This document shows positions 16,072-38,195 of a stretch of DNA of 64,000 nucleotides, one piece after another. The stretch is from Phallusia mammillata (Eukaryota). The translations under genes were made by a program, and so were the position numbers. The stretch is taken from assembly GCA_965637545.1 (NCBI GenBank), contig OZ281498.1, forward strand, positions 4,340,001 to 4,404,000, written 5' to 3'. The first letter of the stretch is position 1, and each line of letters starts with the position of its first letter. The notes under the pieces were generated by a model. It did not search any database. It saw nothing but the letters and a program-made list of their open reading frames with translations, and was not told the DNA's origin.

Positions 16072-19000
16072 ATGAATGTAATATTTGAGATCATTTCTGT
16101 TGTGGTGAGCTTGTGGATTCTAAACAGTAACACGGTTCTCGCGTCATGCAGTATGACGTCACCTTGCAGGATAGTTGGTAAGTCTGCAAATATTGTTAAC
16201 TGGTGTGTTTGTGAGAAAGAAAATACTTACAGTGATAATGAATTTTAGTGATAGTATTAAGTGAAACTGCCATGTCGAACCTAAACAATGCCACTTTCGT
16301 CTGTTACAAAAATAGCGCTGACTGGTCATTTTCCTGTAGGCTGCGCTTTGTAACATGCATAGGCACTATTGTTTCGAAAGTTGCATCATACAAATGCAAC
16401 AACATTTGTTTTACGTCATTATATTATGTCGACATATAGGGGGACTCCCGTTTGTGCAACCGCGACAAGTTCACAGTACAAACGGATTTCTGCGGTTGAA
16501 CTTGTCTGTTGATGTCACCGAGCTGAAACTGGATTGGCTGACAGTTCGAAGACGTAGCTACAACCGTGAAATTCCTGGACCAACCTGGAGAATCAAACCA
16601 GGAGACACTGTTAACTTAACATTGGTACTTCGGCGTTTTATCAGTTATTATTTGTACCTGAGTTTTGCTAAGTGATTAAATTGGGGGTAAAAATAGTTAT
16701 CTGTTGGAAAAAAAAATTGTGATCTCCAATAAGGGATATACAGCTGTTCTTTGCTTTTTCTACGTTCATACCCTTTAAACTTTTATCAAAATTTTTAATG
16801 TATGCGTTTAAAAAAAATGTAGCGTTGTAGTGGAAAAGTGGAATTAATAGCGTTTTTGCCTATTTGGTAGCGGAATTTTGAAAAAAATGTTAAAAACATT
16901 AGTATTGTAACTTTTTTATGTTTACTAATGTATGTACATAGTCTTAGTTTTTCCATCGTATCTTGTTTTCCTTGCTTTAGTGCTTTGACCCTCAGAGGGT
17001 TTATGTACCCCAGGTTAAGAAATCCTTCTTTGTATAGGTATTGACAAACTTCCGGTATTTTAGTTCAAGTGCAGTGCTAATGCAAAAAATTAGCGTTAAT
17101 GAGAACTTTATCTTAAACTTAAATGCAAATTGTAACTTTTAGACAAACAAACTGACCAGCCCGGAATACATTTCTCAACACAATAAGTATCAGCTTCCAA
17201 ACCACACTAATATACACACTCACGGGTTACATATTAGCGGAATGGTAAGTGGTCATCCAAAGGCTCTAACTTATCGTTTATGCCGGTTATTGTGTTATAG
17301 AACCATCATGACAATGTCTTCGTCAACATTACTCCTGATAATGGGCAGTATCACTACACGTACCCGATCCTTCCATATCATTCGCCTGGTACGTACTGGT
17401 ATCATCCACATTTACACGGATCCGTAGACCTACAGGTATAAGGGAAACAAATTCACCAACATCATGTTCAGTGGTTATTAAAAGGACTTTTCGACAGACG
17501 TATAGTGGGATGTCTGGAATGATTATTGTAGAGGATTCGACGGATTTCAGAACGCCTCAGCACATACAGGATGTGTCATGTCCCATTAATTGTAAACACG
17601 ATATCCAGTTGGTGTTCCAGCCACTTTTGATGTATTCCAAGGTGGCTGGAACAAAAGACGACGGATTCGCTCATCTCCAAGTAGAAATACACGATCACTT
17701 ATTCTCGTAAGTGTATCATTGTAGTGGGATACATTTTTAGCCTTTAAAATACTGATTTCATATATACTAGTTGTTCCCTAATTTTTCGAAAACACTTTTG
17801 CAGAAATTTTATTTCTTTGGTAAAAAATGCAGCTGATTAATACTTAAAGGTTTCATGGGTACTCGAATTTACAAATTTAAGTTTAATAATATCGACGTCG
17901 CATTAGAACGAGCCTGATAATCACTGATCTATATAGTCTTACCTTTTTGGCAGGCTCAATGGAACAAGCATCACAGGATCAAACAACGAAAGTTTGTTTG
18001 ATTGGGTGACAGACGAAACTAACGGGGTTAACAACTTCACCACTAATGGTCTACTAAATCCCGTGTTGAATTTACCCACTGGAGAAACTAAAAGATTTAG
18101 GTAATGCTGCAATAATTACCACTAACATGAAAACTAATTTTAAAACTCTTTCAAGAATGGTAAACGCTGGAACAGCCTCAGTTTTAGAATTGTATATTTC
18201 TGATGAGCATTACAATTCGGCATGTGATTTCTATGAGATCGCCATTGATGGAATTTATCTTGACAAAGCAACGCCGCCCCGATTTGGAAAAAGTTTTCTT
18301 GTGCCTGCTTCAAGGGTAGACTGGTTGGTCGTCTGCAACAAACCAGGGACTTATTACGTACGTTGTCGTTTACAAGTAGAGCTTTTTAGCAACTGACTAA
18401 CCCAACATGTTTGCAGCTAAAATCTTACTCGCCCGAACTCGAAGACATTTCTACCGGTGAAATACAACGAATTAATGGGACTCTGCTCACGATTGTGGTT
18501 ACTGGTCCAACTACGACCACTTCCATACAAAGAGATCTTCCGAGGAGGCCTGATTATGTGTCAGATTTTCAGGACTTGACACAGTCAGAAGTGCATGGAC
18601 GCTTTGTTATCGAGGCGGGAAGTGGCCTTACATTGAACCGGGAATTATTCCAGAGCAAGGAATTTTGGAGGTAAATTTCAAGCTGCATATTTTATACGAT
18701 TTCACTATGTTCCATGTACTTTGCAAGTCTCATGATTTAATCCTAAATTGGAAATATATCGGCTATAGCGCTATACAGAGTCATGTAGAGCCATCAGTCT
18801 TACCAGATCTGTGTTTAAGGTACAATGTGGAAGTGGACACTGTGCAGGAATGGTATCTGACAAACACTGATACAATACAAAGCCACCCCATTCACATACA
18901 TGTGAACAGCTTTCAGGTATTGCCATATTGAAAAAGGGGAGATTTCAATCATAAAGACAACATAGTTCACCTATAGGTTATTAGCTACAATCCATACACT

Positions 19001-21115
19001 GGTCCGTTCGAGAGCAAGAGTCAGAAGTACTGGAGTCAAAACAAGGAACCCTGCTTCTTTCAACACAAGGAATACAACGGTGAATAACAATCATACTTCA
19101 CCAAACTTTTTTATCTATTTACGTTTACGTTCATTATCGAAATGATCTTTTAAGTAACATTATAGTATATTCGTCATGTAACTTAATATAAACGAATCGA
19201 TAAGACTATTTTTATCATTTGTGCAATGCAAGTCAAGCCAAACGGTTCGTTTGAATTTTCAGCGGACAGAGATAGAAAAATGATCCATTACGTCACATTT
19301 ATCCGTGTCTTTTGTACCTATATTTATGTTACAACTGTTACAATTATTCGCAGAATCTATGAAAGTTCCCATGCCGAAAAATCCACTCAAGTATCTCGGC
19401 CACGATAAGCGTTGGAAGAACGGAAAAGGTGGTCCTGAGACCATTGGCCTTTCACAGCCTGGAGTGTTTCGTGACGTCATCCTGGTCCCGCCATTATCAA
19501 ACATAACGGTAGAGCTATTAACACCAAACCTCACGACAGACCCACATTTAGCTAATTTTCGATAGGTGGCGCAAAGAGCTGAATTATTTATTTAGCATCT
19601 GAAGAGGGGTAGGGCTAGGATGTAAGTTTTCAAAATTTTACATTACAATTGACGTTTTATTGCAAGTTTTATCGAATTCTAAGTGCGTATGCATTATCCC
19701 GACCCCATTAGCACTAACCGTGAGCATTTTAGGGATATATCGTTTGAATGGCTAAAATGCTGTTTCCGCCAACTATCGAAAATTAGCGAAATGTGTGCCG
19801 TGAGCAGGGAGTCGAACCGGAACTGAACCCGAACCCGCGAACCGGTTTGAGCGGTTAATTTCATTGAACCCGAACCGAACCCGAACCGCTAATTACGATT
19901 TTCTAAAAACCCGAACCGGAGTTGAACCCTATTTTTTGTTTGGCGTTGGACCCGAACCGGAACTGAACCAGTAAAAAATGCAGTCTGTTTTATATTTTGT
20001 GATTTTTTTTCAAAACAACGCACTTAAGAATACGCGAGATAACACTTATAGGGCGTGTCAAAAATAACAGTGCACGGACAAAAATCTTGTGGGGTTTGAT
20101 AAGGCCAGGAAGATGATAGGTAGAATTAAATTGAAACGAATGAAAATTTGAACCGGTTTAAAATCCGCAAACCGGTTCTGACCGGATAATTTGCCCAAAC
20201 CGGAACAAACCCGAACCCGAAAATATACATTTTTAAAAACCTGAACCGAACCCGAACCCTTAATAACAAAACGAAGTGAACCCGAACGAACCTGAACCCG
20301 TACGACAAGCGGTTCGCTCCCTGGCCGTGAGGTATGGTGTTAGTGGATTTTCCAAACAGTAAACACGTTATTACGAACTGGAGTAATTCACTGTTTCGTG
20401 ACGGCATCTGTAATTATTTTTTAGATCCGGTTTAAGACAGACAAGTTTATTGGTAACGCTGTGATACATTGCCATATTTTGCCACATGAAGACTTGGGAA
20501 TGATGATGACTGTCAACATTTTACCGAAAGGTGTGACTATAATATTGTGCTAATTTTCCGAAAAGTTGACAGCTTTGCTCTTTTTAACTCGCTTTGTGAT
20601 ACTGAGGTCACTTTACTTTGGAACACGATACATGGACATAAAAAATAATCCAGTTCCATGGACATAAAAAATAATCCAGTTCCGTTTTCTATATGTGATG
20701 TCACCCGCACTTCCATCTAATTGTTTCCTTAGTGCTTATTATATAAACCCCGTTACAATATCATGTGAAAACAGCGGTTGCCGAAAGGTTTTCACTAAGA
20801 TATATTGCACACAGACAAGCTCAAGTCTAAAGAGCTCTTCTGGCAAATGTGATTTTATTCCGACGTTTCGACGTCCTATACAGGTCGTCTTCATCAGGGT
20901 AAATAACACTGATAGACAAGCTCTTTGGCAGTTCCTTTTTTAATTAGCACTACTTGTTTTCTCGATAAGGTTCGGACCTCAACAAACAAGTGTCGGTTAA
21001 ATCGGGAAATGCGTATCCAGGAACCTGCAATGAATGTGATGCTTTTCCTTTCAATGCTGAAAGTCCTTGCAATGGCGAGCCTAATTTGTTTCTTCGAACA
21101 GTCAGGTTTGAATAA
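16072..21115 (+). CDS. Secreted three-domain multicopper oxidase (laccase-like), copy 1, 13 exons
   Basis: Signal peptide MNVIFEIISVVVSLWILNSNTVLA. All four Cu motifs are present after splicing: TNIHTHGLH, GTYWYHPHLHGS, HPIHIHVNSFQ and IHCHILPHEDLGMM. GT-AG exons stay in frame to TAA at 21113-21115. Confidence 0.92.
19508..20352. mobile_element. MITE inserted at the exon 11/intron 11 junction of MCO1, itself interrupted by a hAT MITE
   Basis: About 55-bp imperfect TIR (..TAACACCAAACCTCACGACAGACCCACATTTAGCTAATTTTCGATAG / CTATCGAAAATTAGCGAAATGTGTGCCGTGAG[insert]GTATGGTGTTAGTGGATTTTCC). Absent from the short paralogous intron of MCO2 (about 26343-26409). Confidence 0.75.
19805..20323. mobile_element. 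hAT MITE with GAACCG/CCGAAC subterminal repeats
   Basis: TIRs CAGGGAGTCGAACCG / CGGTTCGCTCCCTG. Perfect 8-bp TSD GCCGTGAG at 19797-19804 and 20324-20331. Confidence 0.92.
20823..20913 (-). ncRNA. Minimal type I hammerhead ribozyme (Penelope-like-element type) within a 91-bp TSD-flanked insertion
   Basis: Minus strand reads GTGTTATTTACC-CTGATGA-A-GACGACC-TGTATA-GGACGTC-GAAA-CGTC-GGAATAAAATCAC. This gives the core CUGAUGA/GAAA, stem II, a palindromic ACGT stem III and a GUC site. A 10-bp direct repeat AGACAAGCTC flanks it at 20813-20822 and 20914-20923. Confidence 0.75.
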
Positions 21116-22701
21116 ATTTTAAAACATTTTTTCTATCTGTTTTAAACATATTTGTTATACATGATATTTCAGGTGGATTTTGTCTTTACTGTTCACACCT
21201 TTTCGCGAACTTTTCATCACAAGATAAAACGCAGGAACTTACAATATTGAGTCTTATTCTTAAACGTCGTCTCGCAGGTTCTTTATAACTTATATCATTT
21301 ATTTTTGCTTTCTTTCTTATTAATTTGTTTATATTTAACATAGTAAGACTATCCATTTCATGTCGTAGTCAAGGGTACGAAAGCTATGGATGGTGGAATG
21401 CAACAAAGAATAACGCTATGGTCTGGTTCCAATTAACCGTATATTATGGTGTCATTTGAAATACAGGTACTGTAGCTGATTTAAACCAAGTTTTTTAATC
21501 ATGCTATTGTTCTTTTTGCAACCTGGCATGCGATTTCTAAACTAAGAGTTTGTTGCATGGAATAATTTGAAGCGAATTCTACATCCTTCCAATTGTCCAT
21601 TTTTACTTCGAAATGCCTTTTTTGATAAATGGGCACAATTTGGTGACTTGGTTAGCCGACGGGTTAAAAGGCTTGTAAGCTTACAAAAAGCATTTAAACT
21701 TTGACCAATCATGAGAAATAAACCTTTATTGTAAAACTTATTCGCTGTTTTATCGTTTCTTTGTTGATTTTCTTACCTTTTATGTCGAAACAGTTTGCAC
21801 TGTCTGCATTTTTTTACCTTTTGTTTCATTCATTCGTTTGAATAAAAAATTGGTCGATTTGTTCTTGCCAATAAGTCTGCGTGTGGTGTGGTAAGTGCAT
21901 GCAATACGATTGTTAAAAAATGCAACACAACTTGTGTAGGGTATAGCTGAAGCGTTTAAACTTTAATTTAAACCCTTTTTGCTTCTTGTTTATAAAGGTT
22001 TGGCGCCGATTTGACTGCTGGGTAGTTTCGATTTATCACTAGCAAAGAACGCTTTGATTGGGAAAGACAGTTAAAACGGTTAAGACAGGTAATACAACGT
22101 CTATGTGTGCTGTATATGTTGAAATAGGTTTTTGTTGGTAATATGACACTTTTAGTCAGTCATCAAAATTTACAACCATACAAAACTTGGTGCAATCAAT
22201 GATTGACATGTTGCTAGTTTCGAGTTCTGTTTGAAATATTTACAAAACGGAAGTTTAGGCTGTCAGAAACTAATTAGAATAATTCTTAGGTTCACTCTGT
22301 GTGTTTCGTCCCAGTCAAAAAGTCTACATGTATTGTTGCATCGAAATTCAGCTTTTTACTTTAAGCTACATGCAGACATCGTGTACGCACGCGCACAGTT
22401 TTAGTACAAAACTTCCTCGTCGGTTCCTGTTCAAAGTCACGAACGGAAGTGCTCCAATACATCTCAAAAGTAGCTTCGTAACTTGTTCTTGGCGCCATAT
22501 GTCAACTCAAGTGCTATTCGAGAGTTGAGAAAAGGCGAGTTTAGTTCTTACCGAATATCCTATTCAAACCTACAATGGAATGCATTTTACACTGTGCTAG
22601 AGAGCCTGTCAAGTTGATTTAATCTGTACTTTAATGCGAAGTATTTTTAACATTTAGCAAAGCGTTGAGAATATATTTGGAATCAAAACAGACAACAAAT
22701 T

Positions 22702-25700
22702 ATGAATGTATTATCTGAGGTCATTGTCGTTGTGGTGAGCTTGTGGATTCTAGAAGGAAACAAGGTTATCGCGTCATGCAACATGACGTCACCTTGCAGA
22801 CTGGTTGGTAAGTCTACAAATAATTTACACCAAATGTACAACTTAACTGATGTGATTTTGGAAATAAAAAAATACTTGTGATGGAGTGATAATGAATTTT
22901 GGTGACTGTGTAAGTCGAACTGCCCTCTGGTCAAACTTAAACAATGTCAGTTTGGTCGGTTACAAACATAGCGCAGACTGGTCATTTCCGGTTGCAACAT
23001 AGCGCAGACTGGTCATTTCCGGTTGCAACATGCGAAACATCCACTAAATGCATGGAAACTATTGTCTCAAAAGGTGAATCATTAAAAGTGAAACTGAAAT
23101 GTAATTGGCGAAAAATATTACAAACTAAGCAACAACATTCTTTTACCACAGTGGTTGCCAACTTTTTTGTTACATCCCTCCCTTTGCCCATCTCCGAACT
23201 ATTCATTCCTCCCTATAAGACGAAAAACAAATATAACATAAAATTTTTTAGCAATTTGAAATAGACCTTATAATTAAGGATGTCCATTCCAGAATCCTTT
23301 ACAACCGGTTTCAAATGTGAACCGGATCCAAATTATAATGGACATAATAATGCATAAACAAAAATATTATGTAACATTTCCAATGTAAATGTTTTTTTAC
23401 AGTTTTTATGAAATTTCTCCCCTGAACTCATAAAATTCCTCCCTAGGGAGGAATTCCTCCCCTGTTGGGAACCACTGGTTTACCATAATAATGTCATGCC
23501 AACATAGGGGAACTCCTATTTGTGCAACCACGACAAGTTCACAGTACAAACGGATTTCTGCGGTTGAACTTGTCTGTTGATGTCACCGAGCTGAAACTGG
23601 ATTGGCTGACAGTTCGAAGACGTAGCTACAACCGTGAAATTCCTGGACCAACTTGGAGAATCAAACCAGGAGACACTGTTAACTTAACATTGGTAGTTTG
23701 TTGTTTTTAATAGTTGTTGATTATACATAAGTTGTTTGTTAAGTGACGACAATCATGGTGAGTGAATCCAACAGTGAATATAAATTTTAATCGTTATAAA
23801 ACATCCCTACCCTAAAAAAACGTTTACAATTTTTTTACAAATCGTCATACATAGCCTTAATTTTTCCATCATATCTCCTTGCAGTAAAGCTTTGTACTGT
23901 CTGAAAGTTCACGTAACCCAGGTTACGAAATCCTCTTTTATACTGAAGTTAACATACTTCTGTACAAGTACAGTGCTTAAAAACTAGCTTGAATTACATG
24001 AGAACTTTACCAAAACAAAAAATTCCCTTTCAGACCAACAGATTGACCACTCCAGACTATTTTTCGCAACATAACAGTTTCCAGCTTCCAAACCACACTA
24101 ATATACACACTCACGGGTTACATATTAGCGGAATGGTAAGTGGTCATCCAAAGAATTTAAATTATAGATTATGTCGCTTATTGTGTCATAGAACTCTTGT
24201 GACAATGTCTTCCTCAACGTTACTCCTGATAATGGGCAGTATCACTACACATACCCGATCCTTTCATATCATTCGCCTGGTACGTATTGGTATCATCCAC
24301 ATTTACACGGATCCGTAAACTTACAGGTATAAGGGAAACAAGTACATCAACATCATGTTCAGTGAATAGTAAATGTACTTTTCAACAGACATACAGTGGA
24401 ATGTCTGGAATGATTATTGTAGAGGATTCGACGGATTTCAGAACGCCTCAGCACATACAGGATGTGTCATGTCCCAATAATTGTAAACACGATATCCAGT
24501 TGGTGTTCCAGCCACTTTTGATGTATTCTAAGGTGGCTGGAACAAAACATGACGGATTCGCTCATCTCCAAGTAGAAATGCACGACCCCTTATTCTCGTA
24601 AGGTCACCGAGTTGTAATGGATAAACTTTCAGCCTTACAATATTGGTTTAATAAGCACTAGAGATTCCCTCTTTTTTTAAATGCAACTTAAAAAAATCTT
24701 TTCGCTTTAGTGGAAAAATGCAACCAAACAGTACTTGAAGTTACGGTTAGTAATATTAAGGTCGCTTCAAAACGAGGCCGAAAAGCTCATCTATATAATC
24801 TCACCGTTTTGGCAGGCTCAATCGGACGATGATTAAAGGGTCAAAGAACGAAAGTTTGTTTGATTGGGTGACAGACGAAACCAACGGGGTTAACAACTTT
24901 ACTACTAATGGTCTACTTAATCCTGTCTTAAATTTGACTACTGGCGAAATTAAAAGATTCAGGTAATGCTGTTATATTACAGTTATTTATATAATTAACC
25001 CCAACCTGGAAACTATTTGTATTATTCTTTCCAGAATGGTAAACGCCGGAACAGCCTCAGTTTTAGAATTGTATATTTCGGATGAGCATTACAACTCGGC
25101 CTGTGATTTCTATGAGATCGCCATTGATGGAATTTATCTTGACCAAGCAACGCCGCCCCGATTTGGAAAAAGTTTTCTTGTGCCTGCTTCAAGGGTAGAC
25201 TGGTTGGTCGTCTGCAACAAACCAGGGACTTATTACGTACGTTGTCGTTTACAAGTAGAGTTTTTTAGCAACTGACTAACCCAACATGTTTGCAGCTAAA
25301 ATCTTACGCGCCCGAATTCGAAGACATTTCTACCGGTGAAATACAACGAATTAATGGGACTCTGCTCACGATTGTGGTCTCTGGTCCAACTACGACCACT
25401 TCCATACAAAGAGATCTTCCGAGGAGACCTGATTGTGTGTCAGATTTTCAGGATTTGACACAGGAAGAAGTACATGGACGCTTTGTTATCGAGGCGGGAA
25501 GTGGCTATACATTAAACCGAGAGTTATTTAAAAGCGAGGAATTTTGGAGGTAAATTTCAAGTTGTATATTTTAAACAACTTGAATAGGCTGCATGTACTG
25601 TGCAAGTGTCATGATTTAATTCCAACATAGAAACTTATCGACTTTAGCGCTGTCTTACCGAATCTGTGTTTAAGGTACAATGTGGAAGTGGACACTGTGC

Positions 25701-26969
25701 AGGAATGGTATCTGACAAACACTGATACGAAACAAAGCCACCCTATCCACATTCATGTCAACAGCTTTCAGGTATTGCCATATTGATAAGGAGTTTGACA
25801 AACATAAAGACATAACCAATCCATAGGTGATCAGCTACAATCCATACACTGGTCCGTTTGACAGCCAGAGTCAGAAGTACTGGAGCCAAGACAAGAAACC
25901 CTGCTTCTTTCAACACCAGGGATACAACGGTGAATAACAATCATACTTCACCAAACTTTTTTATCTATTTACGTTTACGTTAATTCTTGAAATAGTCTTT
26001 TATCTAGTATTCGTCATGTAATAAAAACGAAAAGTCTGTTTTCATAATTATGGTAATACAGGTCAAGCCTAAAGGTTCTTTTTAATTTTCACCTAATAGA
26101 AAATGAAAGAAGAGTGATTAATTACTTCACTTTTATTTGTTTCTTTTGTACCTATATTTATGTTACAACTGTTACATTTATTTGCAGAATCTATGAAAGT
26201 TCCCATGCCGAAAAATCCACTCAAGTATCTCGGTCACAATCAGCGCTGGAAGAACGGAAAAGGTGGTCCTGAGACCATTGGCCTTTCCCAGCCTGGAGTG
26301 TTTCGTGACGTCATCCTGGTGCCACCATTATCAAACATAACAGTGAACACCTGATTACGAACCCAGACAATTCATAGTTGCGTGACGGCATCTGTAATTA
26401 TTTTTTAGATCCGATTTAAGACAGACAAGTTTATTGGTACCGTTGTGATACATTGCCATATTTTGCCACATGAAGACTTGGGAATGATGATGACCGTCAA
26501 CATTTTACCGAAAGGTGTGATAAATATTAGTCTAATTTTCTGGAAACTTTTTGCTTACTCTTTTTAACTTGCTTTGTTATACTGAGATTATTTTACTTTG
26601 CAACACTTTATACGGACTTCCTGTGCCGTGTTCTATCTGTGATGTCACCCACACTTGTGTATGCCTTTTTCCTGAGTGCTTATATAAACACTGTTGCAAG
26701 CTTATTTTGTAATCTGCATTGATAACAACAGCGATTGTTTAAACTTCTCCACTAAGATGTATTATATATACACGCTCCTTGATAGTTGCGTTTTTAACTA
26801 AGCTACTTTATTTTCTCGATAAGGTTCGGACCTTAACCAACAAGTGTCGGTTAAATCGGGAAATGCGTATCCAGGAACCTGCAATGAATGTGATGCTTTT
26901 CCTTTCAATGCTGAAAGTCCTTGCAATGGCGAGCCTAATTCGTTTTTACGAACAGTCAGGTTTCATTAA
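22702..26969 (+). CDS. Secreted multicopper oxidase, copy 2 (recent tandem paralogue of copy 1), 13 exons
   Basis: Signal peptide MNVLSEVIVVVVSLWILEGNKVIA. Motifs TNIHTHGLH, GTYWYHPHLHGS, HPIHIHVNSFQ and IHCHILPHEDLGMM. Same intron positions as copy 1. TAA at 26967-26969. Confidence 0.92.
23149..23477. mobile_element. hAT MITE in MCO2 intron 1
   Basis: TIRs CAGTGGTTGCCAAC / GTTGGGAACCACTG. 8-bp TSD TTTTACCA / GTTTACCA (7/8). A truncated inverted copy lies at about 46262-46487. Confidence 0.88.
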
Positions 26970-27829
26970 AATCAAATTTCCAAGTTTTTTTGAAAATGTA
27001 TTTGTTGATATTTAGGTGGTTGATGTGTTTATTGTTTAAATTAAACCAATCATTGGACTTTTTAGCACAGGATAAAACGTATGATCATTCCATGTTAAAT
27101 CTCATTTTAAATTTCGTCTATGAAGTTCTTCGTTATAATATTTATTTTCGACTTTATCGTACCGTTTAGAAAAGTGTTTGACAGATTTTGGTGCCCATTT
27201 TCTCTTTTTTTAAATTCGCGGTGCCCTACTTACACTATTATTATTTTCTATACGAATAATGTCGAAAATTCTTGACATGCCACTGAAACCATTCCTTACT
27301 ATAGGCTTTAAAACCCATGAATTCAGGAATCACTTTCACTATACATTTTTGTTTATGGTGTCGCCTTTTCAACGCAATTGGCATATTTATGGTTTTGATT
27401 TTGTGAGCTTCTTACTTTGCACGTACAATTATTTCACGAGAATAAGTAAGACATGAGCACAGACTTTTGTAGTATGTCCAAATCGTAAAGTTTTAATTAA
27501 AATGAGCTCTAATTTTGTAGTTTTGCAAATACAATCATTACTACAAGACGATCCAAACAAATTATGTGATGTTGTTGAAATTAAATTACTTAAAGGAACA
27601 AAGCAATCTTATCCGTCAAAAATAGTTTTATCACTTTTTTTTAGAAGTATAACAAATAAAACACACAGTTATCAATATAGTAGATACATGGTTATGATTT
27701 ATAAGTTTAATTGTTGAGAATCCACTGCAGCCAATAAGTTGACAGTGTCAAGAGAACGATCAACCATCTGAAATGAGACAATGCATTAATTAGTACCTAT
27801 AAAGGCCAAGTTTGTAACCTATTTGTTAA

Positions 27830-30800
27830 CTAGTAAAATGACCTGTCAAGTATGAGGTGAGAAGCTGAACCCGACTGTACACATTGACTCCTGTTGTTAA
27901 AGGGAAATGGATCACATTCATCACATGTTCCTGGATAGGCGTCGCCTGATCTTACTGATACGTTGGCGTTCAAATCTGACCCTATAATAAAATAACTGAT
28001 GCAAAATGTCCAAAACAATTTCAATGTATGTTACATTAATAAATAAAGGTATATACAACTCACCTTTTGGCAAAATCCGAACGGTAGTCATCATTCCAAA
28101 ATCTTCGTGGATCAAAATGTGGCAATGTATAACAACATCTCCAATAAACTTGTTGGTCATGAATCGAATCTAAAAATAGCAGCTTTGGTTAAAGCCTAAA
28201 TGTATATGAATGTCCCAAATCACGAGTGTGTAACTTGTGACCAACTAAAGAATGCAGTGCAAGCGCGCGATGTCAAAATCTAATTTGTTTCAAATCAAGG
28301 GAATTTTAGTTTCGTTTTCAAAGGTTATAGTTTTCTGCAACCTAACATTGCGGCTAGAATCACTTTCGAATTATATCAGATGTTAATTTATTATATGCAA
28401 GTTTGGTACGCAATGAGGTAAAGTCAACATGTGTTATACAAAGGTACGGTCCGAGTTCATATCATGGTGGCTGTGTTTGACTCGTTATTGGTAACGTTGT
28501 ACAGCTCTGCCCTAAAACTTGTTTACTGTGATGTTGGACAACGGTGGCACCAGGATGACGTCACGGAAAACTCCAGGCTGCGAGAGACCAATGGTTTCAG
28601 GTCCACCGTTTCCATCCTTCCAGCGCTTTTCATGGCCGAGATACCTGAGCGGATCTTTTGGTATTTGGACGTCGGCGGATTCTATTGTGCAAGAAAGCAA
28701 AAAAGCGATTGTATAGCAAAGTGAATCAATCATTAAACAAGTAAAGAATATACCGTTGTAGCCTCCAAATTGATAGAAGCAAGGTTCCATCTTCTGATTC
28801 CAGTACTTCATGCTGTTGCTATCGAATGGACCGGTATAAGCGTTGTAACTAATAACCTGTACATTAATGTTGGAAGATTATGAGTGATATAGTTGTGAGT
28901 TTCAAGGTTTGCAAATTTTATTATGGGATATTTTACTTGAAAGCTGTTGACGTGAATATGAATTGGGTGGCTTTCAACTGTTCCTGTGTTGGTAAGATAC
29001 CATTCCTGGACTGTGTCAACTTCCACATTATACCTAAAACAAACAACAGTTTTGAAACAAGAGAACATTTAGCCCTGTGAGGGGATACACATATGTGTCA
29101 AGTATATAGTTTTTTAAGTTACCTCAAATTTATCTTTTGTGTGTTTAATCAATTATGTTGAATTACATGTACATAGTGTGTTATGCAAACATTTAAATAT
29201 CCTTTAGCTCGTTTACAAATATCCATTTCATTTTTTAGTGAAACAAACTACTGATTATAACCTCCAGAATTCTTCGTTTTTAAAATACTCTCTGTTCAGT
29301 GTGATTCCTCCACCAGCTTCGAGTACAAAACGACCATGGACTTGATCTTGAGTTAAATTTCGAAAATCTGACACATACTCGGGTCGTTTAGGAAGCTCGC
29401 TGGGAATGGTAGTTTTTGTTTCTGGCCCAGTTGCTACGATTGTAAGAAGGGTTCCGTTATATCTAGAAATCTTCGCTGTGGAAATCATCTCGAAATCTGG
29501 GGCGTAAGACTTTAACTGAAAAAACATAAGCTGGTCATCATTATGAAACCTGAAGGTGTTTTTCTGTAAAACAAACTCACATAGTAGGTCCCGGGTTTGT
29601 TGCAGACAATCAACCAGTCTATTCTTGAAGCAGGAACAACGAAGCTTTTTCCAAATCGTGGACGAGTTGGATTGTCCAGATAAACTCCATCGACAGCGAT
29701 CTCATAGAAATCACAAGCCGAGTTGTTATGCTCATCCGCCACAAACAACTCTAAAACTTGTCTTGCTCCTGCATTAACCATCCTATGATAAAAGCAACCG
29801 AAGTTTTGTTGGAGATATCGTTAATGACAGATGATTTCAATTTTACCTAAACCGTTTTACTTGTCCTGTAATGATGTTTAAGACAGGATTCAACTGTCCG
29901 TTTGTAGTAAAATTTTCCACACCATTTTTAGTATTATTGATCCAATCCAGAAGAGTTTTGTTACCTGCTCCTTTAATTCTGGTCCTATTGAGTCTGTAAA
30001 ATGGGATTGCGCCTATCACTTTAGATCAAAAGTACTCGAAAATATTCATAAATTCCATGAAAAAATGGATCAGGTGTAAATATACGTAAACTTGTTGTTT
30101 GAGCTGTTGCAGTTGTAGATGAGCTTGTTAAAAAAACTAATATTATTCTTAACGCCATTGCTTTACACCCAACTGTATTCAGAATGTAAGTGGGCCTAGA
30201 AATCAGTAATTTAGCAAAGTTTGTCATTAACAAACCGTCCCGCGTTCGGCGTATTAGTGTATCACCTATCACCTATATACAAGGTTGCCATCGACATGGA
30301 CCCAACATGCCCGGTTCTCAGCCAAACATGCGGTTCGTCCGTTTAAACTGTGGTTTAAAGTTTTATAAAATTAGAGTGATTTAAAAAATCAATTGTAGCT
30401 CTGTTGGAGCATTTTTCGTCATATCTGAGCTGCATTTTAAATAAAGCATTGCTTACGTGAAAAGTCGGTCGTGCATCGATTGTTGGGCAGATGCGAATCC
30501 ACGGCCAGTATAAAAGAGCAAGGATTGAAATATCAGCTGCACATCATGTTCGCATTTGCCTGGACACGATGCATCAAGTAAGTGCTGAGGTGTTGTAGAG
30601 TCAGTTGGATCCTCAACAATAATCATTCCCGACATTCCACTATTCGTCTGCACAAAGTAGATTTAGAGGCTTTTGTTAGGAAACTGACAATGCTAGAAAT
30701 GTTCTTAACTTTTTGAAAAATCCCACCTGAAAGTCTACTGATCCATGTAGATGAGGATGGTACCAATAGGTTCCTGCTGGATGATCAGAAACTATAGGAT

Positions 30801-32338
30801 AGTTGTAATGATACTGTCCATTTTCTGGTGTCACGTTCACAAAGACGTTGTCATGGGGGCGCTGTAAGTTATAGTATTTGTTTAAAACATTTAATTTATC
30901 TAATAAAGTATCTTACCAGTCCGCTGATGTGTAAGCCGTGCGTGTGGATGTTTGTATGATTCGGAAATTGCAAGTTGTTGTGTTTTGAAACGAAATCTGG
31001 TTTTTGTAGCTTGTTGGTCTGTTTAAAGAAACTGTTTTATAGATCTTTTGAGATGAACATAAATTCATAAGTGGGATCAGCCCTGAAGCGTCTATGCAGA
31101 TCTTTAATATGATTACCTATGTAGATATATAAAAAAGTCAAAAACTACATCAGCTCTGTTGGCTGCCTAATATTAAACAAACGCACTCATATGACTGTTT
31201 CTGTGGAGTAGGTTGTGCCTACTTTTTAATTGCACTCGTTTACACAAGGCCTTGGATGACATGACACCAATGTGGGTGTTTAACCTACGCAAAGTATGCG
31301 GAAATGATTTACTTACGCAATAGGAAGTTCCTAAATTAAAATTTTGGAAAACCACCACTTTTAAACTATATTGTTGTTGCATATTGGCATCGGAATATCT
31401 ATCTCATTTACTTTGTCCTACACCGCTTTAATCAGTGGTTCTTAACCTGTGAGCAAATTTTGTTATTGTAAATTTTATGGCGCGAATACCAATGTTAGGT
31501 TCACTACATCTCCTGCTTTAATACACCACGTCGGTCCTGGAAATTCCCCGTTGTAGCTTCGTCTGGAAAGTGTTAGCCAATCCACTGTGAACTCACCGAC
31601 TTGTACCGAAAGATTCAGTTGCAGAAACCCATTTGAAGAATGAATCTGTCGGGGCTGGACTAAAGGAAGTCCTCCTGCAAATAGAACCATAATCTTTGTA
31701 GTGCATATAAACTGAACAATAATATGCACATAAAAAGAAAAATCCCCGCTTGCGGAGGTAATAGCAATGGCTTTTCAGAGCCAACTAATCAAGTTTCATC
31801 ACTACGAAACCATTCCGTTGTGCCATATTTGAAAGTGAACAACGTCTAAGTTCGAGAAACTTTTTTCGGTCAAGAACTTTAAACCAGACGCATTTCCTGC
31901 TGTTTTTGTAAAGTTTACCCCTTAGAAGATTTTAAAGATAAAGGTCGCCCCCAAGCGTCTTTAACCTATTTACAATGCGCTCCCAACTGATTTTTACTCA
32001 CAAAATTTTCATTAAACCATGTCATATTAACCACCTGGAGGTCCGTTTACCTCTTTTTTAAGAACCTATATGTGTTTTTTTTGTTTTTACTTTTAGATGA
32101 TTTACTTTTAGATGACTATTTTGCTTTTAGATGATTACCCTCCAAAAAACACTACGTTGCCAGTCGCTCTGTCACAAGGTGCACTTTTTCAAAATTTTAA
32201 GCTCATGCATAGCCTAATACGCTTAAATGACTTACCCTTGAGCTTACATGGGGAAGTCTTACTGCATGTATCGGTTCCCGACACATTAGTTTGGAAGAGC
32301 GGAAAACAAATTACACAAAATGCAATAATGTATTTCAT
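27830..32338 (-). CDS. Secreted multicopper oxidase, copy 3, 13 exons
   Basis: ATG at 32338 (MKYIIAFCVICFPLFQTNVSGTDTCSKTSPCKLKG). Motifs TNIHTHGLH, GTYWYHPHLHGS, HPIHIHVNSFQ and IHCHILIHEDFGMM. Ends GTCDECDPFPFNNRSQC...RSFY*. Confidence 0.92.
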
Positions 32339-33614
32339 GTTTATTACATTCAAACTTAAAAAACGTATATCATCAAACCAAACGCTATTTTTAGTTTCTA
32401 ATTACATAATATCTATGAAAAACAATAGTCTCTACTTCCACTGTACAACTGACCACCTTTTGCAAGTAAAGTCGGTATTACAACGCTGATATAGCCATAC
32501 GTAGGGGTTGTTTGTGGTGTGGAAAATCCTATGAGCAACAAAGCATTGCAAAACATTGCCCACTATTGATGCAAACATTACTCATCTTTGGAGGTGGAAT
32601 GAGAAATGGCTGGGATTTCATTGTTGATTTACTCCTTCACTTTGAGGAAGTGCAAAGTAACAGCTATTTTTACAAACTAGCTGTTTTTGCATGAAACGTG
32701 TTTCAACATCGCTTTACTTGCCAAACTTTTGTTGCAGTAAACGCAAGAAGGCTAAAAGTTAATTTCTAAACATATTATCTAAAGTTTGTCACAGCGCACT
32801 GCTCCCCAACGTTAAAAACTTTTCTCGACACTATTGCACCATACATGCATTGTGACGTTAGATTTCCAAACCTTTGTCCTGTTTTTCATGGTTTCTTTCC
32901 TTTCTAAAGTGCAGTCTAACCGCAGTTGTTTTTAGTGTGTAATGGTAAGTTCATTTATGTACTACCCTACCAGTTAGATTGTTTTAACCCTGCACGTATT
33001 TTGCTGGTCTGTTTAAATTAAGTAGGCAAACTTTGTTCAAAATCCGGCTATCTTTCAAATCATTAACGGGCGCACATTGAACTGTTTGACTAAACAGAAG
33101 AATGGAAAGTTGATTGTACAGCGATTTTCAATAAAGGTATCTAGTTTTGTCTCGTTTTTTTGCTTGCTTGATTGTGCCTTCTATTTTGGTTCAATATTTT
33201 CTTGCTAAAGCTATGATGCATTATTTTATTGCTAAATCTATAAAGTAGTAATTGTTGATTGATTTCTTTACTCTTGATTGGTTCCTCTTAACTAACTAGT
33301 ATTAAGTCTGTAACCCTTATCGATACCAGTAAAAATCACAACATTTCAATCATACAAATACATTTTGATTTGAACTTATAAGCTCGTTTTTATGTACGCT
33401 AATTCAGTTGTATAAAATTGATATTATAGTATGTACACTTTAGATTTAGAATATCAATTAGGTCGTTAGTGATCCTAAAAATAACTTTATTTTGTAAAAT
33501 GCAGACTTGACTATCAAGACCATTGTCATGAGATAAGCAAAAAAACTACACTAGCGAAACGAAATATCTGTACTATAATTATATTTTGTTTCTGAAGAGT
33601 GCCCCCATCTCGTA

Positions 33615-36600
33615 TTAGTTGGGCCGGTTAGCCCCTCCAGGCGGTGTTGATTGCGGCGGCTGGTTTGTTTGGGTGTCTATGGGGTTGGGAATGGGTAGAG
33701 CCACCGGCTTTGGCCTTTGCTGCAGGTTAGCCAGTGTCAATGGCGTAGGTGCCGATGACACACACTGACTACCGTTGTTAGGCGGAAACGGATCGCAACG
33801 CTGACAAGTGCCAGGGTAGGCGTTTCCGGAAGTGACGTTGGCAGAGAGGACTTCACCTGAAGCAACAAACACAAACAGTCATGTCGGTTTCATGATTTGT
33901 TCACAAACAAAACACAAATCACAGCATACCATACCTTGGTTTACTATATCGGTCACCATCATCATTCCAGAGTCTTCGTGCCCTAGAATGTGACAATGGA
34001 TCGTGACGTCGCCGAGGTATTTGTTGGTCATAAAGCGAACCTGTCGAGATAAAAACAGTTCAAAACCTCAGTTCTGACATTCTAGTTGCAATATGACTCT
34101 TCTGCAGACCGTAATATTGGAAAGAGGTGGAACCAGTAGTGTGTCACGGTAGACCCCTGCGTTCGAATATCCAAGTGTTCCAGTACCACCTTGGGCCCAC
34201 CTCTTGTCATGTCCCAGATACTTTAGAGGGTCAGAAGGGATATTGACAATGTCGGAACCTGTTGGAATACAAAAACATGCATCAGATAGCCCGCAACGTC
34301 ATTAACCCACGATTATAACTTTCGTACTATTATATTCGGCATGTTGATAGTAGCAGGTATTATTTTGTTGATCCCAATATTTCCATTTATTTGTGGTTTT
34401 GTTTTGGCCATCGAAAGGTCCAGTGTATGGGTTGTAGCTAATCACCTAAAAACGGAGTTGTTAACTGGTTAAGCAAAAAACGCTACTGCGGCTTTAAGCT
34501 ACTTGTTACTTGGTTAGTTACTGGCAAAAATTCGTTCTTTGGACTTTTGGAGAACATAGCCCATGGAGACCATTGCTTTATTTCAATGACAAACCTGAAA
34601 ACTATTGACGTGAATATGGATAGGATGGCTGCTGGTGGTTCCAGTGTTGGTGAGATACCACTCCTGCAGTTTGTTTACCTCAACCTTGTACCTGCATCAG
34701 ACACGAATCGTCATGATGTAAAACAAACTGTCAAAAAGAAACCAACTATAAAATGGCTTAATACCTCCAGTACGTTCCGTTTGAAAACAGATCACGATTT
34801 AGAGTTTTTTGTGAGGAGGCTTCGATCATGAACCGTCCGTGTACTTCACTATCACTGGCGTTTCGGAAATCAGCCTGGTACCAAGGTCGTGCCGGCAATG
34901 TTGTATTGATTGAAGTGTTAGTGATTGATCCTGATACTGAAAGAGTTAGTAACGTCCCGTTGTAACGAGCTGCGTTGCCGATCGATGGATCATCGGAAGG
35001 TGAAGCCAAAGATGTAAGCTACAATGAAATGTCAGTTTTGGGTTTCATACCTGTTATGATAAAAACTAGTAAACTCACGTAAAATGTTCCCGGTTTGTTG
35101 CAAACAATCAACCAGTCGACCTTTGCTGCTGGGACTATGAAGCTTTTCCCAAGATGTGCGGGGGTTGCTTTGTCCATGTAAACGCCGTCCCAAGCGATTT
35201 CATACCACTCGCAGGCCGGATTTCCGTTTGCGTCGATAACAAACAGTTCAAGCGTAGGTCCGCCTCCAGCATTTACCAGTCTATACAGTCAAAAGGTGTT
35301 TTTTTACAACGAAACCCAGAGAAAAAATATGCGTCGTACCTGAAACGTTTGGTCTGTCCTGTTGGTAGATACAAAACTGGATTTAACCGGCCATTTGTAG
35401 TAAAGTTGTTCACACCGTTGTTGGGGTCGATCATCCAATCGTACAATGTCTCGTTAGTGCCGGTAACATTATAATTCTTTAACCTGATCAAAAACACACA
35501 ACATTTAACAGAATCAAGTTTTGTGTTAACCAAGGCCAAAGCGAACTTACATAAACAAGTTGTCTGCAATTTCGATCTGAAGTTTGGCGAATCCGCCTCC
35601 CGAGTAAAGCATCGTCGGTTGCATGATCAACTGTACATCATGCTCACAATGGTTCGGACAGGATACATCTTGCAAATGCTGTGGCGTGCTGGCGTTGGTT
35701 GGATCCTCGACAATAATCATCCCTCCCATTCCTCCATTAGTCTATAAGATTTTTCCTTATAGTATATTTGCCTAAACTAAACAATACACTAATACGAATG
35801 CAAAAAAGTTTTTTTGTGCACTGGTTTATGCAATGGGATATTTGCACCAAAAAAACTTTTCAACATAACCAGTACATAAACATATTTAGTGCAAAGTAAC
35901 AACTTATACCTGAAACTCGACTGATCCGTGCAAATGGGGATGGTACCAATATGTTCCTGACGGGTGTTCTGATTCCACTGGATAGTTATAGTCGAAATGC
36001 GAGTTGTTGGGGTAAATTTGAATGAACACATTGTCATGAGGTACCTATAACACCGTGTTCATTTTTTAAACAATTATCGAAAATTTAGATTCACACCATT
36101 TTTTACCTCTCCGCTTATATGCAGTCCGTGCGTGTGGATGTTAGTGCTATTCGGAAATCGTTTCCCGTTATTCGGTTCATCTTTTTCCGGGAATGTAAGA
36201 AGGTCAGTCTGTAAAAGACACAAGGCTTTTAATTGTCCTATTTTTTGACACTACATAAAATATATATTTAACCTACCAATGTTAAATTGACGGTGTCACC
36301 AGGCTTTACACGCCATGTTGGCCCTGGAATCATTTTATTGTAGCTACGTCTGTTCAATGTAAGCCAATCAACGGTGAACGGTGTCACTTCCAAATTAAAA
36401 TTGACTTTCAGAAATCCATTGGAAGAAACAAGATGTTCGGGTAGTGTTAAGTTAAGTCCGCCTGGAAAAGATTTAGATTTAGTGGTTCTTAAATTTTTCT
36501 GTATTTTTGCTAATACTTTCAGTATAAGTATTTTTCAAGAAGCTTACCTTTCAGCTTGCACGGCGACGTATAGTTGCATGCTTGTAGAGTAGGTGTGGCA

Positions 36601-36650
36601 GATTTTAGCAAAACAGCCACAACCAGCCACAAATAAACCTCTCGAGCCAT
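33615..36650 (-). CDS. Secreted multicopper oxidase, copy 4 (most divergent, Pro/Gln-rich tail), 13 exons
   Basis: ATG at 36650 (MAREVYLWLVVAVLLKSATPTLQACNYTSPCKLKG). Motifs TNIHTHGLH, GTYWYHPHLHGS, HPIHIHVNSFQ and IHCHILGHEDSGMM. Ends GTCQRCDPFPPNNGSQC...QPPQSTPPGGANRPN*. Confidence 0.92.
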
Positions 36651-38195
36651 TTGTGTTAGAATTATTGCTTAGCCGGAAAAAAAATTGCCAAGCAAAACAA
36701 TGTTTGCCCAAATTATCCTATTCCACAATTCGTTAAAACTGTGTTCTGTCGGATTTTTAGGCAAGTAAACTTCGAATATGTGTCCCGGTATATATAGTTT
36801 TTGAGTTGGTAAGATGTATTGTTAATCTGTCAAACGCACCTCAACCAAACTATTTCCTGCATAATTTTACAGTCCACTAATGACAAGTTAGCATGTCCGG
36901 TTCCGCTGCTTGCGAGGTATAAGTCATCATGAATTAAGAAGCTGTGTTAATGCACATTAATAACCACAAGTGTCCCTATCTCATTAGTCCTAACTGTGTG
37001 CATTTTCGAAGAAGTCGGAAAAACTAAAATATTGCAACAAGGGCTTAGCGGACTGATTAAATAAGTGCGCTTGGGCACAGACTATAGGAGGGCTAATTGT
37101 GCTTTGTGGCCTAAGCGGTCGTGCAATTTTAGACGTTATCCCCTTTAGGCTATGTTTTTTACTATTGAGATCCAAACCAATGGCACCTCCCTCCTCGGGG
37201 TTCCATCCAGGACCAGGAGGCTCTCGGGAACGAATCCCGGTCAAGCTGGACCATTGGGCCAAATTTCTTCCATGACGTGCCCGTTCTTTTGTTTTTAAAA
37301 ATCACATAATTTACGCTTTTTATGTATGGTGTTGGGGTGCAATATATTCATATTGAGCGAAAGTAGGCATAAATTACCTTTTTAAGTTGTAAGTTTTCAT
37401 TTTGTCGAAAAATGATCTGCATAGCAAAAAGTATGATGTCTATGTGGAAAAAACTGCCTATCAGAAGCACCCATGCGTTACGATTGCAGATTTGCTCTGT
37501 ATATCTTTCCTATTTGTATTTTTTTGTATTAATTTTAAAACCGGGCATGAAAAATAATTAGCACTGAAAGAAGCAGAATTTAGGTGTTTGAGAAATTCCT
37601 TACTGATTGTAACTGCATAGCATTTAACTTTTTTTAACCGCAAAGTATTTTCATGGTCTTAGATTAGACCAGGGGTGGGGAACCTTTTTGTTTATAAAGG
37701 CCACCAAACGGTTTGTTGACACTCGTTTAGGCCGCATAGACTATTTCCCAGGCCAAGGACAGTGGTGTTCAATCTTTTTGACTTACAGAATGGTCGTTTG
37801 CTATTCCCTCGTAACTTGCGGTCTAAGCTGCAACAGGGGTTGTGACTTTTTCATGACACTTGTCACTGTTAGTGACAGGCGTCAATGACAGGGCTGGGGT
37901 GTCACTAAATCAGTGACAGGGCGTCACTAAATCAGTGACAGGGCGCCATTAAATCAGTGACAGGGCAAAATCAGTGACAGGGCAAAATCAGTGACAGGGG
38001 GTTCTTGCGTTCTTGCGATAGTATGAACACAAGCGAATTTATTAGGTCTTTGCTTGTAAGGGTTTTCTTTAAAAATTGCAAGCAGCAAAGGTTTTAAATG
38101 TAAATTTCGTGCAAAAATGTACCTCATGACTTTAATTTTTTGGTATAATCTTTAAATTCTGCAAGCAGCAAAGGTAAGTGTGTTTTTGAACATTT

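Follow-up and report, generated by a model that had tools for sequence, protein, structure and literature searches.

Four complete multicopper oxidase (MCO) genes lie side by side in the 64-kb window of contig OZ281498.1 analysed here, exactly within positions 16072-36650, with an SH3-domain animal gene upstream of the cluster. The genes, g1 to g4, encode proteins of 643-675 amino acids (aa), and no model contains an internal stop. Every gene is split into 13 exons by 12 introns; the 48 introns are all of the GT-AG type, and in the protein alignment intron positions and phases are identical across the four copies. An earlier note on this DNA had reported the same introns and concluded that they are older than the duplications, a conclusion that their identical positions and phases uphold. 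No further MCO copy or fragment was found by tblastn in the window.

The model of g1 (648 aa; 16072..21115, plus strand), with all copper motifs and GT-AG introns, places its exons at 16072-16177, 16440-16624, 17143-17244, 17301-17435, 17498-17706, 17954-18100, 18156-18357, 18417-18670, 18820-18916, 18977-19079, 19354-19508, 20425-20530 and 20970-21115. On the same strand, the model of g2 (648 aa; 22702..26969; exons 22702-22807, 23508-23692, 24034-24135, 24192-24326, 24389-24597, 24816-24962, 25035-25236, 25296-25549, 25675-25771, 25827-25929, 26188-26342, 26409-26514 and 26824-26969) is backed by Pfam matches to its exons, and its protein is 91% identical to that of g1. The other two genes are on the minus strand. 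g3 is a gene model of 643 aa (27830..32338; exons in gene order 32338-32236, 31674-31490, 31018-30917, 30861-30727, 30647-30457, 29993-29847, 29782-29581, 29515-29262, 29033-28937, 28856-28754, 28681-28527, 28169-28064 and 27981-27830) that converges on g2, their stop codons 860 nt apart. g4 (675 aa; 33615..36650; exons 36650-36548, 36461-36277, 36208-36107, 36044-35910, 35741-35551, 35483-35340, 35280-35079, 35018-34765, 34691-34595, 34445-34328, 34258-34110, 34040-33935 and 33856-33615) is the copy that differs most from the others; its protein has a Pro-rich tail at the C-terminus, and its model is crossed at intron 4 by an RNA contig.

Intron 11 of g1 measures 916 nt against 66 nt in g2, because it holds a MITE-like insertion detected by repeat search (19543..19795; 37-nt inverted ends, 89% complementary) and AACCCGAACCG-rich repeats at 19867-20301. 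Behind this intron lies the HCH exon of g1, at 20425-20530, which we add to the earlier description together with a 13th exon that encodes a conserved SG(N/D)AYPGTCxxCD motif.

Beyond the g1/g2 pair, g3 is 69% identical to g1 or g2 and g4 58-59% identical to the others, the branching order of the paralogues being ((g1,g2),g3),g4. Between g1 and g2, dN is 0.046 and dS 0.194, and the dN/dS of 0.24 indicates purifying selection. As to expression, on which the earlier note had made its proposal depend, a contig from run X4 joins 35741 to 35910 and skips 168 nt with CT..AC ends, exactly the predicted intron 4 of g4; this support consists of one low-depth contig for one of the four genes, from runs whose RNA nature is guessed. 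With 48 introns, the upstream SH3-domain gene and this spliced contig, the genes are genuine nuclear genes and not contamination, as had been claimed.

Copper sites and predicted localisation

The motifs H-T-H-G, W-Y-H-P-H, H-P-I-H-I-H and H-C-H-x3-H-x4-M are present in all four window proteins, and together they supply 10 His, 1 Cys and an axial Met, the ligand set of a three-domain MCO. The earlier note was thus right to see four intact genes with full T1/T2/T3 copper ligand sets, and the motif contexts that it quoted all occur in the translations. Run on single exons, the Pfam search of the window genes gave matches that were weak overall: Cu-oxidase_2 was found on g2 exons 9 and 12 (27.9 and 30.7 bits, cut-off 20.4), and Cu-oxidase_3 on g2 exon 4 scored 19.6 bits, just below the 21-bit cut-off. 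Full-length orthologues carry PF07732, PF00394 and PF07731.

ER-type signal peptides without a Tat RR motif had also been described. The N-termini of g1-g4 are hydrophobic and signal-like, with no RR in the first 30 residues. The accompanying word "secreted" has to be softened: the models as built are likely to be secreted, but their 3' ends are predicted only, and orthologues often end in a C-terminal membrane or GPI-like tail encoded by a further hydrophobic-tail exon. The proteins of the family carry 10-20 N-glycosylation sequons and about 10 conserved Cys, which, together with the signal-like peptide, would place the working enzyme in the extracellular space or at the cell surface.

Predicted fold and bacterial relatives

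Our evidence on the fold and from PDB and NCBIfam was taken from orthologues, a Ciona orthologue (50% identical) serving as proxy for the window proteins. By sequence, its best PDB match is the Thermus laccase (9cpm/6w2k/2xu9), then CueO. Its AF2 model (pLDDT 91, pTM 0.88) pairs with solved MCOs at E values between 1e-29 and 7e-36, and Foldseek ranks the Thermus thermophilus laccase best, then Sulfurimonas and Campylobacter MCOs, CotA and CueO. This modelled proxy places the window proteins in the CueO/Thermus-laccase structural class, a bacterial fold, and apart from the MCO types usual in animals; in two database searches, the 120 best matches of each include no MCO from an arthropod or a vertebrate. 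Both the likeness to bacterial three-domain MCOs and the unlikeness to the usual animal ones had been asserted from the motifs, and both hold.

The laccase of T. thermophilus HB27 (Tth-MCO) is matched by sequence at E ~1e-30 over domain 1 of the Ciona orthologue, and by Foldseek at E 7e-36 with a TM of 0.82-0.85 on the target, with just 21-22% identity in the structural alignment. It shares with the chordate proteins three cupredoxin domains, the T1 axial Met, and WxHPH and HCHxxxHEDxGMM-type motifs. In contrast, the chordate proteins exceed it in length by about 200 residues, with a eukaryotic signal peptide instead of a Tat signal, and with N-glycosylation sequons, conserved Cys pairs, an extra C-terminal module and an insertion of ~60-90 residues between HPxHxH and HCH. 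They have no Met-rich segment: in g1-g4, at most 3-4 Met fall in any 30-residue window. E. coli CueO (NF008205; 1kv7) resembles them in the motifs that surround each of the four copper sites, but its Met-rich helix and Tat signal are missing from the window proteins. In the profile search that the earlier note had called for, CueO (NF008205) scores highest of the NCBIfam models with the orthologues from Ciona and Branchiostoma, which are also positive for Pfam Cu-oxidase domains. However, P0001, P0114 and P0034 score 101.9, 107.1 and 63.5 bits against a cut-off of 525, and because of these 64-107 bits the chordate family is not a CueO equivalog. We rejected an assignment as bacterial cuprous oxidase on this score, on the lack of a Met-rich segment and on the lack of a Tat RR.

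A family of tunicates and amphioxus

RefSeq MCOs of Ciona, Clavelina and Styela come nearest, at 47-50% identity, followed by those of Branchiostoma (35-39.5%). RefSeq has already given such names as "mco-like", "CueO-like" and "laccase-like". Among the 120 best matches of each of the two protein-database searches, the close relatives (>370 bits) among named proteins come only from these tunicates and Branchiostoma and no other metazoan is represented; scores then drop to the microbial matches, at 250 bits or less. The earlier note had proposed a survey of genomes; these searches of protein databases extended the family to Branchiostoma and returned no vertebrate among those matches. In three other tunicates and in amphioxus, the orthologues sit on contigs of chromosome scale.

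Among the tunicate relatives, Ciona intestinalis LOC100183735 "multicopper oxidase mco" (XP_018668543 / XP_078488097) and its paralogues, like the Clavelina lepadiformis and Styela clava proteins, are 47-50% identical to the window proteins over their full length and share with them an N-terminal C-x(3-5)-PC, an SCPxxC linker, the family-specific insertion after HPxHxH (VISYNxYTGP...) and the C-terminal PGxC (PGTC) motif. All 12 introns of the window genes recur in Ciona P0066 at the same positions and in the same phases; P0066 has one intron more, its 13th, and a last exon that codes for a transmembrane helix, and the window models lack both. The Branchiostoma proteins ("mco-like / CueO-like / laccase-2-like"; P0114 of B. 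lanceolatum is an example) are 35-39.5% identical to the window proteins over ~610 residues and have a signal peptide, the PGTC motif, a hydrophobic C-terminal tail and a deletion in domain 2 relative to the tunicate copies. Five of the 12 window introns are shared with P0114 in position and phase, whereas the rest of its 14 introns differ.

In our maximum-likelihood tree, g1-g4 form a clade of their own (100/100), which is thus a separate, later expansion than the Ciona, Clavelina and Styela copies, and join five Ciona and Clavelina sequences at 97/90. Support is 100/98 for all tunicates, 100/92 for amphioxus and 100/100 for the chordates (100 in a 299-sequence FastTree), with amphioxus sister to all tunicate copies. 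This sister position and the five common introns imply that an intron-bearing nuclear gene was already present in their last common ancestor; vertebrates would later have lost the family, and each of the tunicate lineages would have multiplied it independently. We are confident that the cluster is a tandem, lineage-specific expansion of one gene into four paralogues, within a chordate family of extracellular three-domain MCOs of the CueO/Thermus fold.

Origin of the family

The earlier note had proposed an old horizontal gene transfer (HGT), which the patchy distribution of the sequences makes plausible and which the tree and the AU test do not demonstrate. Nesting of the chordates within a bacterial clade was not found: the chordate clade groups with foraminiferan, dinoflagellate, diplonemid, stramenopile, Perkinsus and chytrid MCOs, and 40 bacterial sequences lie across a 100/100 branch of length 0.59 from both. 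We give somewhat under an even chance to one old transfer of an intronless CueO/Tth-type MCO from a bacterium or microbial eukaryote into the chordate stem, after which the gene would have gained introns, been retained and expanded in the amphioxus and tunicate lineages, and disappeared from vertebrates. Such a history requires only a single gain and a single loss, and it fits the confinement of close named relatives to tunicates and Branchiostoma among the best matches, a fold class that is otherwise bacterial and the 28-30% identity of the window proteins to their best bacterial and protist matches alike. Introns convincingly common with the Ectocarpus, Chrysoparadoxa and Synchytrium genes are absent (one near-match among their 65). 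However, the donor lineage is not identifiable; a long branch (0.43) leads to the chordate clade, which is nested in no sampled group; other animal phyla were covered via protein databases only; and related genes occur in microbial eukaryotes of five supergroup-level lineages, so the family may be old in eukaryotes. An old MCO subfamily of eukaryotes (at least of opisthokonts) that was inherited vertically and lost many times, with amphioxus and tunicates as the only animal survivors, is a serious if less probable reading. With bacteria as outgroup, chordates are sister to the microbial-eukaryote group (98/61), the FastTree recovers the same neighbourhood, and forcing chordates and chytrid fungi into monophyly costs 10.1 lnL and is not rejected (p-AU 0.133). 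This reading demands losses in vertebrates, ambulacrarians, protostomes, non-bilaterians, unicellular holozoans and most fungi, in the face of chytrid and stramenopile genes that have no introns in common with chordates; moreover, the microbial-eukaryote group includes P0298, which bears the label of a gammaproteobacterial MAG, so the boundaries between domains are not tight in this part of the tree.

Bacterial-type motifs (HCHIL-HED-GMM), the bacterial-type fold and the known bacterial CesA transfer in tunicates (PMC13390645) could suggest a similar, tunicate-only acquisition with a role in tunic chemistry, or else an assembly contaminated by bacteria. We consider both very improbable. Contamination is contradicted by the spliceosomal introns, the neighbouring animal genes, the spliced transcript and the chromosome-scale contigs that carry the orthologues. 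Acquisition in the tunicate lineage, as the earlier note had it, is overturned by the sister orthologues of amphioxus, which has no tunic, and the chordates do not fall within bacteria; the introns common with tunicates also argue against an independent acquisition by Branchiostoma. Any transfer must therefore be older than the tunicate-amphioxus split, and the tunic role cannot be ancestral.

Returning to the transfer into the chordate stem, we envision, again with somewhat less than an even chance, that a marine microbe passed a CueO/Thermus-type MCO to a stem chordate by HGT more than 500 million years ago. The gene would then have gained a signal peptide, introns and a module for membrane anchoring; amphioxus and tunicates would have kept it and increased its copies, and vertebrates would have lost it.

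Proposed function and significance

By analogy with the established MCO mechanism, the T1 copper (two His, one Cys and the axial Met, from HPIHIH and HCHx3Hx4M) would take single electrons from the substrate, and a His-Cys-His bridge would carry them to a trinuclear T2/T3 cluster, presumably held by eight His (HTH, HPH, HPIHIH, HCH), where each enzyme would reduce O2 to water. The substrate could well be extracellular phenols or catechols, in laccase-type cross-linking or defence. It might, with less probability, be metal ions, the enzymes acting as Fe(II) or Cu(I) metallo-oxidases like McoC and Tth-MCO, bacterial metallo-oxidases related to the chordate family; some other substrate is less probable still. 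The role type proposed in the earlier note has a functional analogue in insect laccase-2 (MCO2), a secreted three-domain animal MCO that oxidises catechols and cross-links extracellular matrix in cuticle tanning, but belongs to a different MCO subfamily, with no arthropod MCO among the best matches to the chordate proteins.

These genes are ordinary MCOs, with orthologues already named, and it is their distribution that is odd: named proteins come only from tunicates and amphioxus among the best matches, with a fold otherwise typically bacterial. The literature searched contained no paper on the chordate MCO family, which appears unstudied as a whole. A systematic Ciona HGT screen drops any gene with a deuterostome match and has Branchiostoma floridae in its database (PMC13390645), so the family could not be detected there. 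If the stem-chordate transfer is true, it is a rare and old inter-kingdom acquisition, one of very few candidates older than the chordate radiation, that supplied amphioxus and tunicates with a predicted laccase-type extracellular oxidase; if the gene is instead an old eukaryotic one, it clearly illustrates differential loss on a massive scale. With either origin, the chordate MCOs are candidates for the laccase-like share of the phenoloxidase activities reported from ascidian blood and tunic, so far ascribed to haemocyanin-type and other enzymes (PMC9395347).

Gene structure of the cluster

The four tandem multicopper oxidase (MCO) genes of the window, g1 to g4, are members of a known enzyme kind, within an annotated but unstudied clade restricted to chordates, and their significance lies in an unusual phyletic pattern and the question of HGT that it raises rather than in gene architecture. 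To model them, we took stop-to-stop reading frames on both strands, found four groups of mutually similar coding pieces and chained these through GT/AG pairs that preserve the frame. Candidate models were ranked by agreement among the four copies and by splice-site quality, with manual curation of introns 1 and 7. This yielded four complete genes: g1 (16072-21115, plus strand, 648 aa), g2 (22702-26969, plus strand, 648 aa), g3 (32338-27830, minus strand, 643 aa) and g4 (36650-33615, minus strand, 675 aa). The genes are alike in having 13 exons and 12 introns; borders are GT-AG in all 48 introns, the phases (1,0,0,0,2,2,0,2,0,1,0,1) are common to the four genes and no model contains an internal stop. 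The copper motifs HTHG, WYHPH, HPIHIH and HCHx3Hx4M are present in every one of the four proteins, which also carry 10-20 N-x-S/T sequons, 11-14 cysteines and hydrophobic N-termini that lack a twin arginine. Exon 13 encodes a conserved SG(N/D)AYPGTCxxCD motif, the 3' ends being predicted.

Since the four models are complete, stop-free and equipped with all copper motifs, the earlier note was right to see here four intact, intron-bearing genes, and we regard g1-g4 as a real, intact and probably expressed cluster. The most similar copies, g1 and g2, are 91% identical, with dN 0.046 and dS 0.194; the resulting dN/dS of 0.24 thus places this youngest pair under purifying selection. No extra copy or fragment of the MCO genes was found by tblastn within the window. 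Searches with single exons were of little use: only 3 of 10 matched Cu-oxidase models in Pfam, the exons being too short to inform, and a haemocyanin match of exon 5 in the PDB (E 1.6) was discarded as meaningless for so short a query.

Intron 11 of g1, behind which the HCH exon of this gene sits, is 916 nt long, versus 66 nt in g2. It holds a MITE-like element (19543-19795, 253 bp, with 37-nt inverted ends that are 89% complementary) and a repeat array (19867-20301) of four copies of a AACCCGAACCG-rich 64-nt unit, both of which look like insertions that postdate the g1/g2 duplication. On both strands of 15000-38500, every Rfam family stayed below its gathering score, a threshold that may miss short or variant hammerheads.

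Relatives and distribution

A profile of exon 7, built from the four copies and scored against 1.84 billion cluster representatives, matched only 65 proteins, mostly exon-sized ORFs. About 12 were longer (425-740 aa). The full-length relatives match the window proteins at 36-50% identity; they are RefSeq entries from Ciona intestinalis, Clavelina lepadiformis and Styela clava and bear the names "multicopper oxidase mco(-like)", "CueO-like", "laccase-like" or "bilirubin oxidase-like". We then searched databases with two full-length queries, the Ciona orthologue and a Branchiostoma protein, and kept the 120 best matches of each. Among these, the matches that score above about 370 bits make up the close family: tunicates, Branchiostoma, where several species each have several paralogues, and 2-kb transcript-like contigs. 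Below it, at scores of 250 bits or less, bacteria (Nitrospira, Streptomyces, Geobacter and others) are mixed with microbial eukaryotes: the foraminifer Nonionella, the dinoflagellate Polykrikos, Diplonema, Paraphysomonas, Perkinsus, Ectocarpus, Chrysoparadoxa and two chytrids. Other animals are absent from the 120 best matches of either search, as are arthropod and vertebrate MCOs.

By BLASTP, the window proteins are 35-39.5% identical to Branchiostoma sequences, and the best bacterial and protist sequences alike reach 28-30%. A scan of one genome per bacterial or archaeal species found relatives in many phyla, at 25-34% identity over the best segment, with no outstanding donor among them. The clusters obtained from ESM Atlas were all generic MCO groups (plant SKU5, arthropod MCO, bacterial) and are uninformative on close kin.

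Our full-text literature search found no paper on this chordate MCO family in tunicates or amphioxus. A recent screen for HGT in Ciona (Tamura, Oda-Ishii and Satou, 2026; PMC13390645) lists eight gene groups, none of them an oxidase. Its first filter drops proteins with a deuterostome hit in the top five and its database includes B. floridae, so the chordate MCO family would have been removed.

Origin of the chordate family

We inferred a tree of 102 proteins over 531 columns with IQ-TREE (LG+C20+F+G4 PMSF, 1000 ultrafast bootstraps and SH-aLRT). The four window proteins form a clade (100/100) that joins five Ciona and Clavelina sequences (97/90), then all tunicate and unnamed transcript sequences (100/98), and the transcript-type relatives (P0100, P0105-P0112 and others) all fall within this tunicate subclade. 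Amphioxus sequences form their own clade (100/92), and all chordates are united at 100/100 by a branch of 0.43. A further 100/100 branch, of length 0.59, has 40 of the 41 bacterial sequences on one side. Opposite them stand the chordates and a 20-sequence group, in which 12 come from named microbial eukaryotes, 7 are of unknown origin and one carries the label of a gammaproteobacterial MAG; with bacteria as root, this group is sister to the chordates at 98/61. FastTree on 299 sequences gave the same chordate neighbourhood.

Introns offer an independent way of dating the gene. We mapped the exon structures of Ciona P0066 and Branchiostoma P0114, two database relatives, on their genomic loci and projected the introns onto the protein alignment. 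All 12 window introns are common to P0066, which has a 13th intron followed by a transmembrane-helix exon. Five of them recur in P0114 at the same position and phase (alignment columns 37, 98, 177, 247 and 363), and one further P0114 intron, of matching phase, lies nine columns off the tunicate position. Such a pattern would not arise from two independent acquisitions; the gene was therefore nuclear and intron-bearing before amphioxus and tunicates diverged. Contamination of the assembly and a recent bacterial transfer are both ruled out by the introns, the genomic context and the amphioxus orthologues. A bacterial transfer specific to tunicates, a narrow reading of the earlier note, is excluded by the amphioxus orthologues, the shared introns and the tree.

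How the chordate ancestor came by the gene is thus the question, and two answers deserve weight. We consider it close to an even bet that an MCO gene was transferred into the chordate stem, the more parsimonious reading of presence and absence across lineages. Intron positions also speak for a stem-chordate transfer, in that none is common with microbial eukaryotes: of the 65 introns in the genes of Ectocarpus, Chrysoparadoxa and Synchytrium, one came near a chordate position, which is chance level. The method is able to detect sharing, since the two stramenopile genes, our control, have four positions in common with each other. The gene could instead have descended vertically, as an old eukaryotic MCO subfamily with many losses, a reading that we give appreciably less than an even chance. 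For vertical descent speaks the tree itself, in which microbial eukaryotes are the neighbours of the chordates. A clade of chordates and chytrids is also not rejected by the AU test: constraining the chordates and chytrid fungi together in a 43-row subset costs 10.1 log-likelihood units (p-AU 0.133).

Two observations concern individual database proteins. In one tunicate subclade (Styela P0058 and P0118), copper ligands have been lost, HPxHxH reading HTLSIQ and HCH being gone; judged by these residues, the subclade looks like a non-catalytic derivative of the family. Four other sequences (P0298, P0285, P0287 and P0289) are MCOs fused to a fibronectin type III domain. P0298, whose 33-kb contig carries a gammaproteobacterial MAG label, falls with dinoflagellate-type eukaryotic sequences and not with other bacteria; mis-binning of the contig or a transfer between domains could account for this.

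Fold and proposed activity

For fold, PDB and NCBIfam comparisons, the Ciona orthologue P0001, at 50% identity, stood in for the window proteins. Its best PDB matches by sequence are Thermus thermophilus laccase (9cpm, 6w2k, 2xu9; E ~1e-30), followed by CueO, Campylobacter MCO and CotA. An AlphaFold2 model from a 40-sequence family alignment (mean pLDDT 91, pTM 0.88) again ranked Thermus laccase first in Foldseek (E 7e-36, TM 0.82-0.85 on target), ahead of Sulfurimonas and Campylobacter MCOs, phenoxazinone synthase, CotA, CueO and bilirubin oxidases. The likeness to bacterial Thermus-type MCOs proposed in the earlier note is thus correct at the level of structural class. CueO is the best NCBIfam model, yet the orthologues reach 64-107 bits where the cut-off is 525 and are therefore not equivalogs. 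The window proteins lack the Met-rich segment of cuprous oxidases and, unlike these, carry 60-90 additional residues between HPxHxH and HCH as well as an ordered PGTC module at the C-terminus.

MCO chemistry is expected of g1-g4 because their ligand set is intact and the mechanism of such enzymes is established. A type-1 copper (His2-Cys-Met) would oxidise the substrate one electron at a time, and the His-Cys-His bridge would carry the electrons to the trinuclear cluster for the reduction of O2 to water. The signal-like peptide, sequons and conserved Cys pairs mark it as an enzyme of the secretory pathway. Amphioxus has the family and no tunic; a tunic-specific role is therefore not ancestral, and later recruitment to such a role within tunicates is possible.

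Members differ in their C-termini. A hydrophobic tail, of transmembrane or GPI-signal type, ends Ciona P0001, Clavelina P0102, Styela P0113 and Branchiostoma P0114, among others, and is missing from P0056, P0107, Branchiostoma P0213 and P0214 and the four window models; soluble and anchored forms thus both occur in the family. We looked in the window for a 14th exon with such a tail, as in Ciona and amphioxus: g1 and g2 give only an out-of-frame hydrophobic reading of exon 13, and g3 gives none. Just past the g4 stop, an ORF at 33568-33530 ends in a hydrophobic tail (...IIIVQIFRFASVVFLLIS), and several GT..AG pairs could join it to exon 13. An anchored g4 isoform like those of Ciona and amphioxus is possible, through splice sites that are weak and without RNA support.

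Transcription

Twelve runs from the same organism, guessed to be RNA, contain 9-15% of the sampled words of 27800-36700, to which the g3 portion 27800-30700 probably contributes most. Within 30701-36700, a contig from run X4 (depth 3) joins 35741 to 35910 and omits 168 nt with CT..AC ends. This is exactly the predicted intron 4 of g4, so one splice junction is confirmed. RNA support is thin: one gene, g4, at depth 3, in runs whose RNA nature is a guess. For g3, the same region yielded only two pieces, one running unspliced from exon 4 into intron 4 and the other lying shortly upstream of the start codon. The latter, a 182-nt contig from run X1 (32443-32625; 105-287 nt from the g3 start), has a depth of 6 and differs from the window at two bases and by a 1-nt deletion; it may represent the g3 5' UTR or a transcript close to the g3 promoter. 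In all four RNA-like runs, a stretch of about 50 nt in intron 2 of g3 (31051-31100) draws many short, high-depth contigs, with unrelated flanks on either side and a word depth of up to ~200; this suggests a dispersed repeat of high representation and not a piece of the g3 transcript.

Upstream of the cluster, a long exon at 5756-6268 (plus strand) encodes a Pro-rich region and then an SH3-like domain (...GWFVG...GTFPGNYV), and is part of an ordinary animal gene.
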